A DNA stretch of 55,468 bases, counting the filler, from Platydemus manokwari (lineage: Eukaryota), in the NCBI GenBank assembly GCA_037951405.1. It is 5 parts of 5 records of this genome, joined end to end, with 100 filler letters (N's around TTAATTAATTAA, not from the genome) between each part and the next. Parts side by side here need not be neighbours in the genome. Positions count along the whole stretch, not along the records: positions 46,068 to 55,468 come from JBBMOY011254763.1; 4 more parts are not named here. One strand, written 5' to 3'. The translations under genes and the position numbers were made by a program. Of this stretch, positions 3,101 through 55,468 are shown piece after piece. Below the pieces are notes generated by a model, which made no database searches, was not told the DNA's origin, and saw nothing but the letters and a program-made list of their open reading frames with translations. Every line of letters begins with the position of its first letter. Within the stretch, counting starts at the first letter, position 1.

Positions 3101-6100
3101 CATGGAAGATTCATTCGATGAGAAATTCGTTGTGAATAATCGATCTGGATTCTGAAAGCACGGACGGATGGATTTGAGAGCTACTTGTTTAGAATATTCA
3201 TCACAAAGTAGTGTAAAACAAACGTAAAATGGCAGCTTGTTACGAATGTGAATGGAATTTTTATAATTTAGAGAATATGCTACATGGGATGTGATCTGAA
3301 TACAAGATTGACCAACATCGTATATTTCACCAAGTTGGTCTTGTTTTATTATATCAATAGAATGATAAATCTTCTTATCAATATTGGTGGATATTTTTTT
3401 GGGTTTATTTGATAAATTATTTTGATTTGTAGTAAATGTATGAGGTTGAAATTCATTATAATTATTCAACATCTTGCATATAAAACGTTCATCGACTTTC
3501 ATTTCTGAGTTTAAAGAATTAAAATCATCGAATTGTTTTATCTTTCCATCCGATAAACTTTTTGAACTTAATGAATTCGATTTTCCACTAAGCAGTTGTT
3601 GATCGATTTCTTCATTGGTTTCAATATTGGGTAAAAACAAGTTGCAATCATCAACAGCCACTTCTTCGTCGTCAAATATTTGATCTACATATGACTGAAT
3701 GACCTCATTATTCAACATTTCGATTCGTGGGCTATTAATACAATTCAATCTGTCCACTACTGAATCGCAATGCTGCCAGAATCGTTTAATGCAATGGTAA
3801 TCGATTTCTTTCAATTCGAAAATTCGTGAATCTTCTATCTTCATTAATGACTGTGGTTCGATGAATCTGAAACAATTTTTGTTTTTGCTGAATGATTTCT
3901 TGGCTATTTTGTTTGAATGAGTGGGTTTGATCAAAGAAATTGTTGATACTGATGTTAATGTATTGACATTGACATTATTATTATAATTTGCATTTGAACA
4001 CTGTTTAATATCATCAAAAGGAAAACTTGGCATCTTAAATGATTCATCTGAACCAAAATTATTCATCAAATTCTCATGAGAAAATTCTGAAGTATCAATC
4101 GATATGTCTGATGGAGGATCTGGTAGTAAACCTTCTTTATCAATAATTGTTTTATTATATTTGCTCATAGGATGTTTAACTATCTGTCGAACAATAGTAG
4201 GCAAAGGTGGTTTAGCAGCATCGGGTCGTTCTGGACTCAGATTTGGAGACTTGCAAGGCATTGGTATCGAAAATGTGATAATATCCGTGGATCTTGGTTT
4301 CTTTTTCAAATTATCAGATGATAATGATCGTCGACAAGGAATATGTTTCAATTGAGAATCACCATTTGGTGTACTAGGTGCACTACGTCTTACGAAAGAC
4401 ATTGGTGAATGTAATGCCTTGCTTGGAAATAGTTCCATATCTTCGTCACCACTTGCCATTCTGCCAATTTCATCTCTCAATGATGACCGGCTAGTAGCTT
4501 GAGAGGTACGATAACTATTCACCAAAGTGTTTTCAGAATAGCCATCCTCACTACTATCTTCAAATAATGGTGGTAATCTTGGACAACTTTGTAATTCAGG
4601 AATAAACTTTGTCAGGGATTTTTGTCCCGTATTAACATTCTCTGATTCAATAGGAAGTGAAAAATCATCACATTTCCTTTTCGCAAGACAATCTTGATCT
4701 TTATTTTGTCTGGATTTAATGAGATAAGTTTGATGCATATATTCCTCTGCATCTAATAAACTACCAGCAGATGCATCGAGAAACAAATCTGAAAAATCTG
4801 TTGATATCGATAAACTGTCATTAATGTCTTTAAATTTCCATTCATCATCTGACGGATTTTCTTGATCTTCTGAGAGTTCACTCAGTGATTTTGTTAAATT
4901 ATTCTTCATTGTAGCTGTATTAATAGTACCAAGATCATTAATTCCAGAAGACGTAGAAAATTTTTGAACCGTAGTACGATAATTACTCGCTGGCTTCGTG
5001 AAATTTTGGAATGTAGATTTGGAGTTAATCTTTGATTTACTGCTTTGATTGAAACTGATGGAGTTACTTCCACTATTCGATAATGAATGTTGGTCGGAAA
5101 TGGTCGATACAAAAGACAGATTATCTATATATGCTGGAGTTTTTTTCATCGAACTTAATGATTCGTCGCAATTTGATTGAATCTTCGAATGGAAATTAGG
5201 TGACAGATCAAAATACGAATCAACATTAGGAGGTTGAGGAAACGTTAATTTTTCATTAAAACCTGAACTGTTGTTAAACGATTGAAGAATACTATCAGCA
5301 TCTGTGCGCTCATCATCCATGGTGGCATTTAAAGATAACAATTCTTCATATGTAGATTCTTGATGCAAAACGTGCTTTGGAAAGCCTGATAAAGTATTTT
5401 GTCAATTTTATCAATGTGACACAAACACATGGAAAGTTCTATAAAATATCAAAGAATTGTTTCGAGTTCATCAAATTTGGGAACTAACCAGAGTTTCCCC
5501 AAGAGAAATTTTGTTCTAAAGAAAGAGTTCTATTTTGTAATTTGGAAAAACAACTTGAAATCATAAAGAATATTCAGAGCGAGAAAGTTGCTGCTATACC
5601 GGTGATTAATCAATTCTCATGACTATGAATTCAAAGGTACCTATTGATGATGAAACACGCTTGGAAAAAACTCAATCTCTGATATGGGTGTGCAGATTTT
5701 ATCAAAATTTCTAACAGCTATGATTCAACTATTATAACAACAAAATCCAATCTTTTTTATGTCAATGATGGATGAGACATAATAGATATCATAAATGTTC
5801 AGTATGATATTCAGCTTAGTAATAAAACTATTCATCATCCGTCTGAGTAGACACGATATCCCATTTTAAAGACAAAAGTGAATGATAAATATATTAAATA
5901 TTTATGATTCCAAACAGATAAACATGAATGATTCATCTCAAAATTATACGATTTGACCGGATTCTCAGAATCAAATTTGTCGACAAAGTTCTAATTTCAT
6001 TAGTATCATACACAGATACACAGTTGACTGTAAATACTTGAAAATCAAATCAATAAATGTTGAGTTCATTCGTATTTAAGTTATGTTTCACATATAAATC

Positions 6101-46067: not shown

Positions 46068-47986
46068 TTTGGAAAAACGAATCTATTTAATCTTTAATTC
46101 ACTTATATACATTAAGATTTTTGAAACTTTTATATTTTATTTTATTTAATTACTGATTGGGTGGGAAATTGTAAATTTATTAACGATGTTTTGGGGAACA
46201 TGTAGAAGACAAATAAATTTTGTAAAATTTATCTATGATGTTTATATTCAATCTGTAGTTTTAGTGAGAGGGTTGGGCTATAAATAAAATGAAGGTTGCA
46301 ATTTATATTTATAATGAAACCTTGGAAGTCGTCACTCTTGTAAAATAATTAAAATCAATTTCGACTAGTCACTTCTACAATAGACTCATTTCTAATAGGT
46401 CTGTGGCTGACCACTGAAATCAAATAATAAAATCAATACTAGTCGGCTTACAACTGACAACAGACTACAGGTAAATACAGGTAAAGTCAACCCTACAAAA
46501 CGAGTTGAATCTCTAGAGAAACTATCAGTCTTTCATGGTCGGTAACTGTAAATCTACCTTAATTCTTTCTTGTGATCTTTATGATGACCAATTTTTTAAT
46601 GTCTTCATTTATCACGGTTTTTTCTTTTGGGTGTTGTCCCATAGTTAATTGTGAATTGCAGTCTTCTTTATGAATTAAGCAATTTATTCCTTTTGTTACG
46701 TTCGGGCCTTATTGATTTTATTGTTTAACTAAATTTAAACTTATTTGACACCACTACGGTCTTAATCGGTCTCTATGAGCTCTTGATTAAAGCGGTATGT
46801 GTAATCGACCTTATTTTGATGTTACTTCACCTCGCATAACCTTATTGTTTGAAGACAATAGATATGGCAGTAGCGATATATTTTAATTAACTTAGCTATC
46901 AGACTCAAATAAGAACTATAATTCTATTTAAACTATTGACTATATTTTTTACGATATGATTATACGATCCCTATATGATTAAGAACTAAAATTTAATGCT
47001 ACAAATGTTTATTAAATACAAAAACTGATTAACAACAATAATAAAATAAAAATTACAGATTGATTTTAAAACTACATTATACTAGATTATACTTATAACA
47101 GACCTTACAATTTCCAGATTTAAAGACGGTTTATATTTCCAACTCTAGGAGTAAAATCAGATTACCTTTCTTCAGAGTTATTTTGAGCAAAGCTCTATAA
47201 TAAGAAATATAATGATACGATATATAATATGAATCAGTATTTTACAAGAATGGGTCTTACTTTGGGTCTTCCAGTAAGATACTAGGCATATACAAAATCT
47301 CGTCCTTCTGCACTGAATGATCTTCTACTGTGGACTGATAGAATTGTGGAATATTGACTTTTCTCTTATACCATAATTGGTGGTAGTGCAATTTTGGCAG
47401 TGAAATAATGGCAGTGTTGATTGTGACTGCTGCCTTATATCTTATTGCGTATTGATATTTTATAAATTATTTTATTATTTTAGGGAATTTCGACGGATTT
47501 GCTCTTGGTGGTTTCATAGATATTTTTATTTTGTATATGTATATATAAATAATAATTAATATCAATATCAATATTTCAAATTGGTTTTTGCTAAAAATTC
47601 CAAAGGTTGTCAAAATATAAAAAATACGCATTGATTAGATAAAAATTAATACAATAAAAACTAATGCACATTTTATACGTACTGTCATGCAAATGTATAC
47701 ACATATTTTTCAATGTGAATTAATTGTTGTGGATTAAATGTTGGCCATAACCCCAACACTTTTAAGGCATTCACGACAAGGAAAGTCAATATGAAAAGTC
47801 AAAATCGAGAGATAATTCCCGATAATAAATTCGTGAAACGAATTAAACTTATCAGTTCTCATTAAACAAAAACCAAAAATATTGGATTAAATTATAATAC
47901 AAAATTAATTGCAGTATAAATTTTCTGATCCATTCACATAATTGATCAACAACTATTGATTGATAATATTATACATTTATTATCGA

Positions 47987-50900
47987 ATGCCTAAAGAAAT
48001 TGTTACTCTTCATATTGGACAGGCTGGTGTACAAATGGGAAGTGCAATGTGGGAACTTTATTGTATCGAGCATGGGGTAAGTTCGGACGGAAAACTTGTT
48101 CAAGACACCGAAACTCATTTAAATGATAGGATAGAAACGTTATTTTGTGAATCAAATGGTCAATATATTCCACGAACTGTATTTGTGGATTTAGAGCCGA
48201 CCGTCATCGGTTAGTCGTTGAAGAAACAATTAAAATATTGATATAAGACTTTCATTTTGTAGATGAAATTCGTACTGGAGTTTATAAAAACCTTTTTAGT
48301 CCTAATAGTTTAATAAGCGGTACAGAAGATGCTGCAAACAATTATGCGAGAGGATTTTACACAGTCGGCAAAGATAAACTGGAAGCATTGATGGACGCAA
48401 TTAGAAAAGTTGTCAATAATTGTGAAAGTGTATCTGCTTTTCAAATTATGCATTCATATGCAGGAGGAAGCGGATCAGGTTTGACAAGTTTGTTATTGAT
48501 GAAACTATCAGAAGCTTATGGAAAAAAATTCCGAGTATCGGTAGGCATATTTCCATCATCGGCAATGTCTCAAAGTACCGTTGATCCTTATAATTCACTT
48601 CTGCATACCCACAGCGCTATTGAGAATATAGATTGTGGCATTTTATTTGATAATGAATCCTTATATAGAAAGGCATTAAATCATTTGAAATGCGATAGAC
48701 CAACTTATATTTTAATGAATCGTTTAATAAGTCAAATGGTAACTTGTGTTTTTCTTTCTCATCGTTATCGTTATGAAGGCACACATCATATCGATGTGGA
48801 TGAATTATTAACAAATCTTGTACCGTTTCCTCGAATTCATTTTCCCGTATTGAGTTATGCTCCAATAGTTAGCCATAGTCAAATTAAACATGAAAAAATG
48901 GATGTTGCAGAACTGACGAGGTTTGTTTTTCAAAGTGATGCACACTTCCTTGACTGTTGTTTTGAGAATAGTAAATACACATCTTGTTGTTTACTGTATC
49001 GAGGATATATTAGTCCAAAAGCTGTATATGATGCAGTGGCTAAAGTTAAATGTGACAGACGAATTTCTTTTGTTGATTGGTGTCCAACCGGTTTCAAATT
49101 AGGCTTAAACACAATTCCTCCGGTTGGGGTTCCGAATTTACCATTAGCTACACCGACGAATTGTCTGTGTATGGTATCTGGGAACGTTGGAATATGTGAT
49201 GCATGGAAAAGAGATAGAAGCAAGTTTGATTTGATTTTCAACAAGCGGGCCTTTGTCCACTGGTTTGTTGGTGAGGGCTTAGAAGAAGGAGAATTTTTGG
49301 AATCTCGAGAGGATATAATGACACTAGAGAAGGATTATGAAGAAATTTCCAAAGACACGGATGATGTTGATAAAACAGTTACTCCATCAACCGAACCGAG
49401 TCCTCAAAGCAAACGGATCCCAGAAAAATCTTCCACGGTTAGTACGAACAAACCTAATCAAGTGAGCCAAAAACAATTATCGAAACTCTCAACATCTGAC
49501 ATTCAGATGAGCACAAAAGATACAAATAAAAATTCGAATCCAATTGAAACCAGAAATCCCAATTATTCGAGTCCAGTAAATGTGATGAAAGATAAAAAGA
49601 CTTCAAAGTCAAAATTGAAAGTCCAAGACTTTTCAACGAAAAGTGATAAAGAAAATAGTGAAATCACTGAACAAATGAATGAGAGCAACAATGCATTTGT
49701 ATCGAGAAGCAATAGCAATTATTTGAAGAAGCCATGTTCGTACAGACTTCCTAATGAATTCGATTTTGGTTTGGAGATCGAAGAGCCTAGTTGGATTGAT
49801 GGATCGCCAACTATTGATAAAATTAATAGTCATTTATCTAATAATGATAATCATACACGTTATGGATATAAATATAGAATAGAAGAAGGTAATCCTACAT
49901 CCACAGAGAAAAGTAAATCACGTAGAATTGGTTCAGTATCAAGAAATGAATCTTTATTTAGATCACCATCTAAAATTGCTCGAGTATTGGAATATAAGCC
50001 ACCAAATAATGTAAATAAGGAAAATGAAAAATTGAGATTCAACAACACCATTCACCGAACTCCTTCCGGTACAGGAAGATCATTTAAAAGGAAATGGTGG
50101 CGAAAAACGACGGGATCACAATCTATTAATAATTCGTCAGCCGATTCTCTGACGGGTATTCACGAAACGAATGGGCAAATATGCGATCTCCTATCAAAAA
50201 TGGATTGTGAACCATATGATAGAAATGATCTTATTCACCATAAAATTCCAATTTTGAAAAACAATTTGTTACCGAAATCATTCATTCACAATCAAAACAA
50301 ACCTTTGGAGTTCAACGAAAATGTTATTGAAAACCCATTTCAAATTTGCAGAAATACAAAACCAAACGATATCTGTTCTTCTTCTGTTTCATCATATTTT
50401 GGTAACAGCTTACCTATACAAGGATATCCTAACATATTCCAAGGTGTTCCACTGTTTTCGTATACTCAAAGCGCTTACGATCGACCTCAAACCAATTCTT
50501 CAATTCTTCCCGAAAGTAAGACTTATTCTCCAATTAATGATGATAACGATGACGATGACGATGATGATACGACTTCTGAATTTTCCATGATTTTACCACC
50601 ACCACCAGATTTCGATCATTTCAAAATCGAATCACCTTCTAAATTTGAAATAATGTCTTCCAATCAAAATTCAAACGCCATACCGATTTTTAGTAATCAA
50701 TTTTTAGTAGAAAAAAAACCACAAAAGCAAGACATATGTAATTTTATTCCTTTTACTGGTCCGAAATTTTCATCTTTTGCTCCATCACTTCCAGCTTTAA
50801 AAGTGCCTGAATATACGAAAATACCACGAAAATCTCTACCAGTACCGGTCTGTAATAATCAATCAAAACTTCATATGTCTGTCAATTATCCTCTTCCGAA

Positions 50901-51078
50901 AAAGAGAAATCTCATAATGAGCCCTATAGAGTCTCTCGACTGTGAAGCTTCAGTTTGCAAGCAACCGAAACTGTCTCTAATGAATTTTATTTATAAGAAA
51001 TTTCATAATTCTAAACAATTATCTGATGAGAAAAAATCATCTTCGAAAGCTAAATTGAATGGGAAAAGCTGTAGATAA
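47987..51078 (+). CDS. Divergent alpha-tubulin fused to a low-complexity tail of about 575 aa (about 1012 aa total)
   Basis: Exons 47987-48209 and 48263-51078. Motifs HIGQAGVQMG, VDLEPTVIDEIRTG, EDAANNYARG, HSYAGGSGSG, VDPYNSLL, TNLVPFPRIHF, FVDWCPTGFK, KRAFVHWFVGEGLEEGEF, LEKDYEE. Frame stays open for a further 1.7 kb. Confidence 0.93.
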
Positions 51079-51222
51079 TTAAATTAATTATCAGTATTAA
51101 AACTAAAAGTTGTGATAAAGTTTTTGCAAAATAGCATGAAGGAATTGGACAAAGAAGCCCAAAACCATCTTAATCTTAATTATCTAAAATAAATACATTT
51201 AGTACATTTTTAATTATTTATT

Positions 51223-51223
<1 letters not shown>

Positions 51224-51300
<77 letters not shown>
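51224..51300. repeat. (AAT)n microsatellite
   Basis: About 25 perfect repeats. Confidence 0.95.
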
Positions 51301-51301
<1 letters not shown>

Positions 51302-51899
51302 GATATCAATAACATATAGGCACTAGTATTGATGAATTAAATGAGATGATTATATATAGGGCTAACTAATAGCTATATCTAATTATCGATAAGATTAGTG
51401 AATTTGCCATAATGATAGCTATCGATGTTTGATGAGTTATCACAATCAGATATCTGATCCATAGCAGAATTTAAGTTGAGTGTAAATATTTTGTGCCGTT
51501 ATAAATGTTCATATGATAATCAATGTATTCAAAAATCACTACAATGAATGAAGATATATAAAAACATTAAATTTGCGATGGTAATCTTAAAAGACTCCCG
51601 AGTGTTATGTTCTCAATACTTTTAAATGAAAACACTAGCGATTGTTCTAAGGGTAACTTAAAATGAACGTTGTTAGATTGTTAACAATAAATACCATATT
51701 TATAGATAATTTTAATGGGTTTTATTTTTTACAGATTTGAATTCGAATGTTTTGATTTCTGAATTGTATTGTTTGTGGTCTTGAAATTGTTCTATATCTC
51801 TGACAGGCTTTATTAACAAATGAAAAATGAAACATTTATAATTTAGTACGAGAATACGTCGAGATGAAAGTGTCGCTGAACTGATCAGAAATTCACTGA

Positions 51900-53045
51900 G
51901 GTTTGCAGCTAGTCCTCGTCTCCGAAAAAAAACGCAACAACAAACCAACCATTAGAATGACTAAATGGACAAGTAGACCTGCAATCAAATAAACATGTAT
52001 GCAAAACATGGTGGGTCCGAGTTAGAAGAGCAATCACATATTTCAAAGCTATCCACAAAACAACAATATCATTCGAATGTGCAGATGGATTCTTCAATAT
52101 CAGATTTACAGATGCCAGACAAATAACATCAGTCATACAAATATGCCATCTTAAACAAATCACAAAAATCCTACACGAAACCGTTCACTTATCTTATCTG
52201 CTGCAATGGGCGACAAGTAACTCCAGCAACTATCTATGCCAAACAGTGAGCCACAACACCAAGCTCAATAAGCTAATCTACAGTGGTGAAATTGGTCCGT
52301 TTGTCTGGAACTTCATCCACAAAGCCAGAACAAACACACTTCCAGTCAACGCGAGACCAATGAATAGAGATCCAAGTAACAAGAAATGCAGAATGTGTCA
52401 AGCACAAGAAGAAACAATGGCACATGTCCTTCAAGTGTGTATAATAAATAGCACACTCATTTCCAGCAGACACGATGCTTGTTTAAAGGTCTCCTCATCT
52501 CAATCAATGAGATAATCCCATATCTCAAAGGTAGTGGTGACGAGTCCAGAATGTGCATCGATATCTATATTGAAAAGGTGTCAAAGAAAATAATCTACCT
52601 TACTGGTTTAAAGTGCCCGATTGATCAACCAGATACAATCGCTACAGCAATATTGAGGAATGAAGCCCACTATCAAAGTTTGACAGTGAAAGTACGAGAA
52701 GCAAAACCGAGCTTCAAGGTCGAGTTGCTGACAATAATAGTCGGTTCTCTCGGGACAATTTCAAACGCCTCATTATCAACACTCAAAAAGATGGGAATAC
52801 CCGAAGTTGACTTGTCGGCCATTGTAGCAGAATTATCAATCACCTCAATAAGATACTCGGCAAGAATCTGGCATCTGCAATGTTCCAATATCTATATCGG
52901 CAACGAGGAGCCATAATGAATAACTGATGTGTATGCTTGTTGTATGAATTGTTTTGTTTTGTTTTTTGTGGCCGCACAGATTGAAATGTAAATTTCAAGG
53001 CTTGCCCATGCTGGCATATAAACTGATTGAATATAAAAAATTAAG
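51900..53045 (+). mobile_element. 5'-truncated, frameshifted R2/NeSL-like (RLE) non-LTR retrotransposon
   Basis: FIHKARTNTLP, CCHC knuckle CRMCQAQEETMAHVLQVC, RHD, then frameshift near 52490 into an RLE-like domain (..LKCPID..HYQSL..IIVGSLG..LKKMGI). Confidence 0.85.
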
Positions 53046-55468
53046 CTTGTACATACAAAGTAGCACCAATAATTAGAAAAAAGATTGGCCATTTCAAGAG
53101 ATGATTCCAGATGAAGTTACGAAGCCGAACTGTATATGTCTGTGAAAGAAGGAAAGTGAAGAAGAAATGGAATAAATCAATTAAACATTCCTGGGAATAT
53201 AGTTGTATAATTCTCATGGGACCATATTGTATGATTGATTTGGATTTGTATTGAATTCCGGTTTCTTGTAGGATTTCTTTGATTCGGATTTGGATTCTAT
53301 TCTTGATTGGGAAGTTGTCCGGAATTGAATCACCGTGTTTTATATTATTCGAATCTCGAAAGTGGCGATGATTGATTACACTGCTTTCTATATTGTCAAA
53401 GACTCAAATGTTGAATTTCAGAAAAGTGAATTTCAGTAATGTTTTGATAGTACCTTTATATTTTCAGAGGCGATTAGAGCAGCATCTATCAATTTCGATA
53501 AATTTGTGTCTTCATGCTCCAACAAGGGACTTGGATTGATCTGAATCAAACTACTTGATTTCAATTGATTAATGATTCAATGAAAGGCCCAAATTCACTG
53601 AAACCATTCAGGCTTACGAGATTTGATGGTCTGATTAAAGGCTTGAATAATTTTGTCGGCATCTTATTAAACTGACAAATTCCATAGGCCAATATCAAAG
53701 TGAATCGAATCGATTTACAGAATCAATGGAAGATATAAAGTTTTTAAAATCAACCCCCCCCCAAACAAGAGCCAATATTTTCTGAAATAACAGATTTCAT
53801 AAAGTTCTAATTTAGCTTTTAATGAGTGACATAAAAATGGAAACTTTTTTCTGTAAACTAATGAGAGCAGAATCTCCAATGGTTTTTATATTTCAGCCTG
53901 AGGAATCAGAAATAAAGTTTGATCAATCTCATACCGAGTGAAATCGAATAAATTCTCCAGCTATTTTGCCAATAAATTAGTAAAATATAAGGATATTTTT
54001 GTGATTGGAATATAAAATTAGTCTTTTCTGCAAGAATATCGACTATGTCTAATAGTGACATCAACAGCATAAGTAAGGGCGCAGACTTTATTTTGAAAAA
54101 TCTCATAAGCACTGTAGTTTGCTACTCAACCACAATAAGTAATGCGTTGATGCCAATGGAAACTGGTAGCATGAATACGATGAATTTTTGCTCATCATCT
54201 GTTTCTGAAGAATCAATTCAATTTAAATAGAGATACCATTTTATGACTAAGCGATTATACTTCATTTTTATATAAATAAACATTTATATTTATACCAAAA
54301 ATGGCTTTATTTTTGTGTTGTCAAATCTTACTGTAAACATTGTTAATAGTTACTTTATTGATGAAAGCAATTTTATGCTCTGATATTTAGTATGTATGTC
54401 ATGGCATTAATATTAGTAATTAGTTTGTTATTCGATATTTATTGTAAAAACTCTTCGTTATAGTCACAATTATTAACCCAGAGAATAAATGAAGCAAATA
54501 ATTAAGCCAAATCGAAAATTAATCGATTGTATTAGAATGATGTCAATTTATGAGAAATAATAAAAGGAATTTAAATAATTAAGATATTTTAATAATTAAT
54601 AATCGCAAAAAAAACCGGCCGTAGGTCGGGTATGAAGAGTCTGAAATAACTTAATAGCCATTATGATATATTTCGATAGTCACATCGTAAGAATCTACGC
54701 TATTACTCTTGACAATAAGCCATTGTCGTGTGAAAAGAAGTCCTTCCAAGGAAGATCATTAATACTCATTCAAATAATTCAGCAGTTGAACTTAATAAGG
54801 ATTACGTGGTGTAAAATTCATATAAATATTTGTAACAATCGTCATCTATTTGCAATTTATCGATCTTTACCATAATATCACGAAAAGATTTATAAATCAT
54901 AAAATTACCACGAACTTGAAATTGGTTAACTCATTGTATTTTTATTCAGCATATATTGCCGTTTTAACCTGTCGTGTTTGTGTTAACCATAAAAGTATCC
55001 AACCCGAACGTCAGCCTGATTGAAATAAGGTTCAAACTCATAATATTGCATTGTTACCGATTGTCAAAATAATCACCTTTTTATAATTAATGTGGTGCTC
55101 AAATTATTGAAAAGGAGACTGATAAATCAAAACGACGGCACTATAGTTCAATTGTTGCACTATTTTTGGTACTCTACTAGTCATCATATTATAGGGTGTA
55201 GACCAGTGATTTCCAAAGTGGTCCATATCTACGTCCAGGTCTACGTTGTTAAAAAAATTAAGGGGGGGGTCAATGGGAAGAATTTTTCAAAATTTGCAAA
55301 AAATAGTATAATTGATACAATTTAAATTTTTAAAAAAATTATAAAAATTTAATCTTCTAGCATTATCAAATCAGGATATTCGCTCGTTGTCTTGTATATA
55401 CCAGGTTGAGTCAAAAGTTATTCATGTTTTTATGCAGGTATTTTATTAACACAAATTGTTATAACGCT

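Follow-up and report, generated by a model that had tools for sequence, protein, structure and literature searches.

The tails of normal alpha- and beta-tubulins consist of 10-25 acidic residues, and the tubulin code centres on them: they are tyrosinated and glutamylated, and they tune motors and microtubule-associated proteins (MAPs). In the genome of Platydemus manokwari (GenBank assembly GCA_037951405.1) we examined a gene in which an alpha-tubulin body is followed, within the same exon, by a tail of 575 residues. The gene lies in a stretch of 55,468 nucleotides made of five parts joined end to end, here called the window, in the part at positions 46068-55468 (record JBBMOY011254763.1). Is this tail a genuine portion of a protein, and if so, what kind of tubulin carries it? 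Our comparisons, made at the level of sequence, showed a two-exon gene whose frame is unbroken and whose body and tail are both under purifying selection, with a conserved 3' untranslated region (3'UTR) past the stop codon of the tail. The gene and its protein are very probably real. With a probability of roughly 55%, the whole is a lineage-restricted, fast-diverged alpha-tubulin isotype of 1012 residues that enters the microtubule lattice and bears its tail as a MAP-like arm.

By reading of sequence and of open reading frames (ORFs), the + strand of this part holds one clear gene, with the following structure:

47987-48209, + strand: exon 1, from Met1 to base 1 of codon 75; ATG at 47987, start MPKEIVTLHIGQAGVQMG
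48210-48262, + strand: intron of 53 nt, GTTAGT...TAG (GT..AG), phase 1, directly 5' of DEIRTG
48263-49350, + strand: exon 2, tubulin body, aa 75-437, with the remaining GTPase domain, the intermediate domain and H11-H12; end LEKDYEEIS
49351-51075, + strand: exon 2, C-terminal tail, aa 438-1012, 575 codons; end GKSCR
51076-51078, + strand: stop codon TAA (ORF reading)

Exon 2, stop included, thus spans 48263-51078. The spliced coding sequence of 3039 nt is a multiple of 3 with one terminal stop and encodes 1012 aa (114.5 kDa), residues 1-437 forming the alpha-tubulin body and residues 438-1012 the tail. The intron before DEIRTG presumably occupies the codon-76 position of vertebrate alpha-tubulin genes. 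An earlier note on this DNA had placed the end of the body, LEKDYEEIS, at about 49350 and had the same exon staying open for about 575 codons; these readings proved exact (49351-51075, 575 codons). The DNA is AT-rich, with a GC content of roughly 17-41% in 300-nt windows across positions 46068-55468. Even so, under the tail's own base composition the probability of 575 open codons is 1.2e-19, in agreement with the note's judgement that a chance ORF of such length is unlikely, and the remaining five frames over the tail contain 24-77 stops. Over 47718-51210 the sequence agrees, without a gap or a single difference, with a 3527-nt Logan contig of run X1, which means that the passage from body to tail is neither a frameshift nor a mis-join; X1 may be the source sample of the window, which makes the contig a second assembly and not independent DNA.

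In order to find relatives of the tail, we searched with the tail only, using a word-index search restricted to long proteins. One protein was returned, P0001 (921 aa), which carries both tubulin domains and whose tail is 59% identical over 96% of the query. The start of P0001, which was called in ORF style, falls within the intron. P0001 lies on L001, a contig from a Logan assembly of another sample, where the gene has two exons like the window gene and its intron, 54 nt long, agrees with that of the window gene in position and phase. Between the two, exon 1 is 81% identical in nucleotides (z 39), whereas the intron (z 2.2) and the upstream sequences (z ~2) are essentially unalignable. The bodies share 96-98% identity, and the tails are 60% identical and collinear, with few indels, all in frame. 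Since 4-fold degenerate sites differ by 0.64 in the body (0.57 in the tail), window and L001 represent different, well separated species.

Despite this synonymous divergence, the tail frame of L001 contains 0 stops. When the tail was simulated 2000 times under neutrality, by contrast, stops averaged 33 and never fell below 18, amino acid identity was about 12%, and stop-free outcomes numbered 0/2000. The p-distances of the tail at codon positions 1, 2 and 3 were 0.27, 0.22 and 0.49, the order (third above first above second) expected for a coding frame. The ratio of nonsynonymous to synonymous substitution rates (dN/dS) was 0.005-0.02 in the body. In the tail it was 0.15 by NG86 (bootstrap 0.095-0.21), 0.11 by maximum likelihood and 0.27 by LWL85, values that are approximate because dS is saturated; a dS underestimated, as is usual at saturation, would overstate the ratio. 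In windows of 60 codons the tail never exceeded 0.45, its first ~100 residues being the least constrained (~0.4). Searching relatives with body and tail and estimating dN/dS on the tail had been proposed before; the outcome is the L001 ortholog, with a tail (0.11-0.27) that is not neutral and without the stop past 49350 that was sought there. These comparisons showed that the tail is maintained by purifying selection in two species. The constraint does not extend to the very end. The last ~22 aa of the window tail are not conserved, and the TAG of L001 (~3262-3264) lies about 21 codons ahead of the window stop, although the DNA beyond it still aligns to window 51010-51075. Because L001 stops earlier, the extreme C-terminus (aa ~991-1012) is free to vary as protein.

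Conservation resumes beyond the stop codon, against a background of saturated 4-fold sites:

51079-51193, + strand: 3'UTR block of ~115 nt, ~88% identical to the 3' flank of L001 (z 19)

AATAAA at 51188-51193 forms the end of this block, which is closed by an inverted repeat with two perfectly matching arms of 10 bp (TAGATAATTA, 51072-51081; TAATTATCTA, 51177-51186); the comparison comprises two sequences and offers no covariation by which to judge structure. An Rfam scan of the part 46068-55468 gave no match. The conserved 3'UTR is in this way placed behind the stop of the tail and not behind 49350. Just downstream of this putative poly(A) signal, at 51224-51301, lies a perfect (TAA)26 microsatellite, at which the Logan contigs break.

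We then asked what kind of tubulin the body is. Its domains were recognized as PF00091 (E 7.4e-15 in exon 1 and 3.4e-33 in exon 2) and PF03953 (E 4.6e-31), all Pfam matches lying above the gathering scores. In a search of PDB the best 60 matches were all alpha-tubulin chains (E ~1e-118 to 1e-125, alpha residues 77-443). The residues that bind guanosine triphosphate (GTP) at the N-site are present (T1 GQAG, D69/E71, D98-N101, T4, N206, Y224, N228), and the nucleotide-site residues kept are Q11, D69, E71, D98-N101, S140, G143-G146, N206, Y224 and N228. By both Pfam domains, by its alpha-closest PDB matches and by these N-site residues, the body classifies as alpha-tubulin. Among the tubulin classes it lies nearest to alpha: D251/E254, which are specific to alpha, are present, and the S9-S10 loop is as long as in alpha. 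In all these respects, as in its helix-12 surface, it resembles canonical alpha-tubulin (TUBA1A/1B/1C; PDB 3j8x, 12dl). On the H11/H12 surface K401, R402, E414, E415, E417, E420, R422 and D424 are kept.

The body is nevertheless not that of a canonical isotype, judged by its level of conservation, its tail, MREC and K40. Against a set of 16 canonical alpha-tubulins (animals, fungi and one dinoflagellate), whose members are 68-95% identical to one another, its identity is only 48-51%. Of the 189 positions that do not vary within this set, it keeps 144 and differs at 45 (standard alpha numbering here and below). The T4 signature reads AGGSGSG in place of GGGTGSG (G142A, T145S), and further changes in the pocket are T179Q and E183D. 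Two residues are inserted before the T7 loop, and the T5 loop (27% identity), the M-loop and the H2-S3 and S9-S10 loops are strongly remodelled. The N-terminus is MPKE (MPKEI) where canonical alpha has MREC, position 40 is Thr so that K40 is absent, and the acidic EEY/EEF tail is missing, the canonical E-hook being reduced to KDTDDVD. With MPKE in place of MREC and no K40, the protein may have escaped autoregulation through MREC and acetylation at K40. On this divergence of the body the earlier note had been silent.

The tail (575 aa, 65 kDa, isoelectric point 9.1) is Ser/Lys/Asn/Pro-rich and ends in GKSCR, as had been described, with S at 14.1%, K at 10.3%, N at 9.9% and P at 8.3%. AlphaFold2 gave it a mean predicted local distance difference test (pLDDT) score of 34.6 and only two short helices, in a model built on a 2-sequence alignment. 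We accordingly predict an intrinsically disordered, net-basic region, a structural reading that the shallow alignment weakens. Conservation along it is patchy, being concentrated in 11 short islands, and the charge profile is conserved between window and L001. Apart from an island at aa 897-918, the features of note are:

50074-50229, + strand: best-conserved island, aa 679-730, 46/52 identical; basic KRKWWRK patch, Ser/Asn stretch, QICDLLSKMDCEPY
50537-50572, + strand: (ATGACG)n hexamer repeat found by TRF, encoding a poly-Asp run
50566-50637, + strand: island, aa 843-866, 20/24 identical; EFSM(I/V)LPPPPDFD, proline-rich with acidic flanks
50884-51009, + strand: C-terminal islands, aa 949-990, PLPKKR.LIMSPIESLDCEAS and KLSLM.FIYKKFH; short predicted helix

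A short helix is predicted by AlphaFold2 within QICDLLSKMDCEPY as well (tail residues 275-280). The LPPPPDFD island resembles the type of motif bound by EVH1 domains, and six Ser/Thr-Pro sites, including RSPSK, are conserved. SxIP-like matches numbered 2 against 1.2 expected by chance, and an enrichment was rejected. The EVH1-type, SxIP-like and cyclin-dependent-kinase-type readings of these motifs carry no statistical support. The poly-Asp run is DDNDDDDDDD in the window and a much shorter GNCDDED in L001, so the (ATGACG)n run shows microsatellite-driven change of length within the tail.

Beyond P0001, the tail had no relatives in the collections searched. No Pfam family matched it at E <=0.1 above its cut-off, and neither a MAP nor a tau repeat was among the Pfam results; the recognizable microtubule-binding repeat or domain of structural MAPs (tau/MAP2/MAP4) is thus not seen in the tail. 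A PDB profile search gave no match, a Protein Atlas search no relative (best score 0.75), and a scan of JGI metagenomes no relative. An exhaustive profile search of 1.84 billion (1.84e9) protein representatives returned only P0001 and P0204, the latter rejected as a repeat artefact.

The body, on the other hand, has closer relatives than any canonical alpha-tubulin. Two proteins, P0144 and P0094 (UniParc UPI0006107164), share 55-58% identity with it and 72% overall with each other; the earlier note had not mentioned such a sister with a different long tail. P0144 comes from the sample of L001 and is therefore a paralog, and the paralog contig L002, from that sample too, has the intron before DEIRTG at the position found in the window gene. 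In P0144 and P0094 a tail of 231-246 aa begins after EKDYEEIAQD and is conserved between the pair, but it could not be aligned with the giant tail. Part of it (KMLKKLNKLQ.RLNQMN) is helix-like and rich in Lys, Leu and Asn. When the exon-1 product and P0094 were looked up by exact match, no additional contigs came up. In a maximum-likelihood tree the four long-tailed sequences formed a clade with support 100/100 on a very long branch. A tubulin phylogeny had been suggested earlier; it yielded this separate clade, and owing to the long branch it did not place the clade in any phylum. A few residues are shared with flatworm alpha-tubulins, which is a hint only. Long tails thus characterize a small, divergent subfamily of alpha-tubulins in which two or more paralogous lineages are represented. 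Among the best 120 matches of each search, the other "long tubulins" were tandem tubulin copies or neighbouring genes fused past a normal acidic tail and were set aside as precedents; the only exceptions were P0001, P0144 and P0094.

How far is such an architecture new? Length is highly conserved among alpha- and beta-tubulins; the named exception is a beta-tubulin variant of Chytridiomycota and Neocallimastigomycota whose low-complexity extension at the C-terminus reaches up to 1,100 residues and is supported by gene structure but not conserved across species (Findeisen et al., 2014, PMC4202323). The statement of the earlier note that no tubulin of this architecture had been described was therefore too strong: in the chytrid-type variants, too, a full tubulin body is followed by a very long low-complexity extension within one gene. 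There, however, the protein is a fungal beta-tubulin and the extension is unconserved, whereas here the body is alpha and the tail is 60% identical with a dN/dS of ~0.15. The resemblance is an architectural parallel and not orthology. Toxoplasma alpha3-tubulin has a 48-aa tail that was termed extraordinarily long (Morrissette et al., 2023, PMC10056924). Like the window protein, the alpha3 of Toxoplasma and other coccidians is a divergent alpha isotype with an unusually long, poorly conserved tail and a Pro inserted in its N-terminal regulatory peptide (MPREI, compared with MPKEI here). It has lost D251/E254, however, which the window protein keeps, and the window tail is 12 times longer; again no orthology is implied. 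Literature searches turned up no alpha-tubulin whose tail runs to hundreds of residues. As far as we have seen, the long extension has its precedent in fungal beta-tubulins, while the alpha body, its divergence and the selection on the tail are new.

Analogies of another kind come from outside the tubulins. The projection domains of structural MAPs and the side-arms of neurofilaments are long, disordered, Ser/Lys/Pro-rich arms with proline-directed phosphosites and short binding peptides, and FtsZ is a tubulin-fold protein with a disordered C-terminal linker and a conserved C-terminal peptide. These are likenesses without sequence homology, and in the present case arm and tubulin form one covalent chain.

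How might such a protein work? D251/E254 and the helix-12 surface are kept and the body is extremely constrained, which makes an alpha subunit of specialized microtubules the most likely role. In the proposed mechanism the giant protein would pair with beta-tubulin and join microtubules, probably specialized or stable ones. From the end of helix 12, which lies on the outer surface of the lattice, the tail would extend outward as a covalent MAP-like arm. This arm might replace the substrate of tyrosination and glutamylation, could neutralize or space neighbouring filaments, and may recruit partners through its conserved motifs (KRKWWRK, LPPPPDFD, TKIP/TTIP and the six Ser/Thr-Pro sites). A MAP-like role is consistent with the residues kept at the GTP site, in the T7 loop and on helix 12, and with a tail that is basic, disordered and dotted with conserved islands. 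A tubulin with a MAP-like or scaffold arm had already been put forward in the earlier note. The fusion itself turned out to be real, in frame, under selection and present in a second species; the MAP or scaffold role is what we infer from it. The mechanism of lattice entry plus MAP-like arm we hold tentatively, at somewhat less than even odds. According to work in C. elegans (PMC12012489), alpha-tubulin tails hinder the nucleation of B-tubules, and a large tail might on that ground dictate lattice architecture.

Several points weigh against an isotype that enters the lattice with a MAP-like arm. Normal lattice entry is not assured given the low identity of the body to canonical alpha-tubulins, the altered T4 signature and pocket, the insertion before T7 and the remodelled loops, the M-loop and H2-S3 among them. 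Steric crowding would be considerable if each alpha subunit bore 575 residues of tail. The giant form is known from two species only, the AlphaFold2 model of the tail is built on two sequences, the dN/dS values are approximate, and the SxIP-like matches are at the level of chance. Run searches for this organism returned a single run of DNA, X1, and none of RNA, and no RNA-seq, cDNA or proteomic support was found. The main rival account builds on the same divergence of the body. It takes the protein as real but not as a lattice subunit: the fold would be a module for beta-tubulin binding, end-capping, a microtubule-organizing centre or a scaffold, and the tail would carry the main function as an adaptor or a condensate-forming region. 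Identity of 48-51%, changes at 45/189 invariant positions, remodelling of T5 (27% identity), the M-loop, H2-S3 and S9-S10, loss of MREC, K40 and the acidic tail, and the very long branch of the clade all suit this account. Yet D251/E254 and the motor- and MAP-binding surface of helix 12, which are expected to matter chiefly in polymer, are kept, and the body evolves at a dN/dS of <=0.02, as in assembling tubulins. We consider a non-lattice protein unlikely, though still to be reckoned with.

Less probable still is that a tubulin of normal length is the main product, with transcripts that end or are spliced soon past 49350 and a tail that is a minor read-through isoform or a separate transcript. 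A GTTAGT at ~49438 is identical to the donor of intron 1, constraint on the tail is lowest over its first ~100 residues (dN/dS ~0.4), and the search for RNA runs returned none. However, the frame continues from body to tail without a stop in both species, where a linker of ~100 codons would be open by chance with a probability of roughly 4e-4 per species; the indels are all in frame and every tail window stays below 0.45; the conserved 3'UTR block and AATAAA sit past the stop of the tail; and the sister paralog, too, runs from EKDYEEI straight into a long tail. We regard a short main product as quite improbable. The most sceptical account, in which the tail is a chance ORF, an assembly artefact or a decaying pseudogene extension, can point to AT-rich, low-complexity DNA and to a tail homolog in only one related species. 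Against it stand the open-frame chance of 1e-19, the identical second assembly (X1 contig), 60% amino acid identity across saturated synonymous divergence and the lack of any stop-free result in 2000 neutral simulations, while the 4-fold difference of 0.64 in the body excludes a mis-estimate from sequences of the same species. This account is effectively refuted. Taken together, a divergent alpha isotype that enters the lattice and carries a MAP-like arm remains the reading we prefer.

About 250 nt upstream of the ATG lies a high-copy repeat (47700-47745), where the summed word-depth of contigs is ~790 as compared with 14 over the gene; it includes a 14-bp tandem repeat at 47714-47743, and many loose contig ends fall at 47730-47744. 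Downstream, at 52246-52916 on the + strand, is a degenerate 3' fragment of a non-long-terminal-repeat (non-LTR) retrotransposon, with an ORF matching the zinc-binding motif zf-RVT (Pfam PF13966, E 1.6e-6) and a second, frame-shifted ORF of 145 aa that resembles unnamed eukaryotic Atlas clusters (0.96). This copy is 5'-truncated, because no reverse transcriptase domain lies upstream of it, and its C-terminus may be of R2/RLE type.

In summary, our results describe an alpha-tubulin of a small divergent subfamily that has kept its catalytic residues and carries a long tail under selection. A further step, which we think possible but rather unlikely, is that of a self-decorating subunit: the giant form and its paralog would build specialized microtubules coated by covalent, selectable disordered arms in place of acidic tails. 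If this were true, MAP-like spacing, bundling and partner recruitment would be written into the tubulin gene itself. A selected, basic, disordered alpha tail of 575 residues would be a natural experiment, in which a built-in MAP-like arm replaces the tubulin code. It would also show that the tubulin fold can drift to ~50% identity while catalytic and motor-binding residues persist, and it would provide a concrete case for the origin of a long disordered extension with short conserved motifs on a highly constrained protein, in which the two paralogs, whose tails are unrelated, can be compared with each other.

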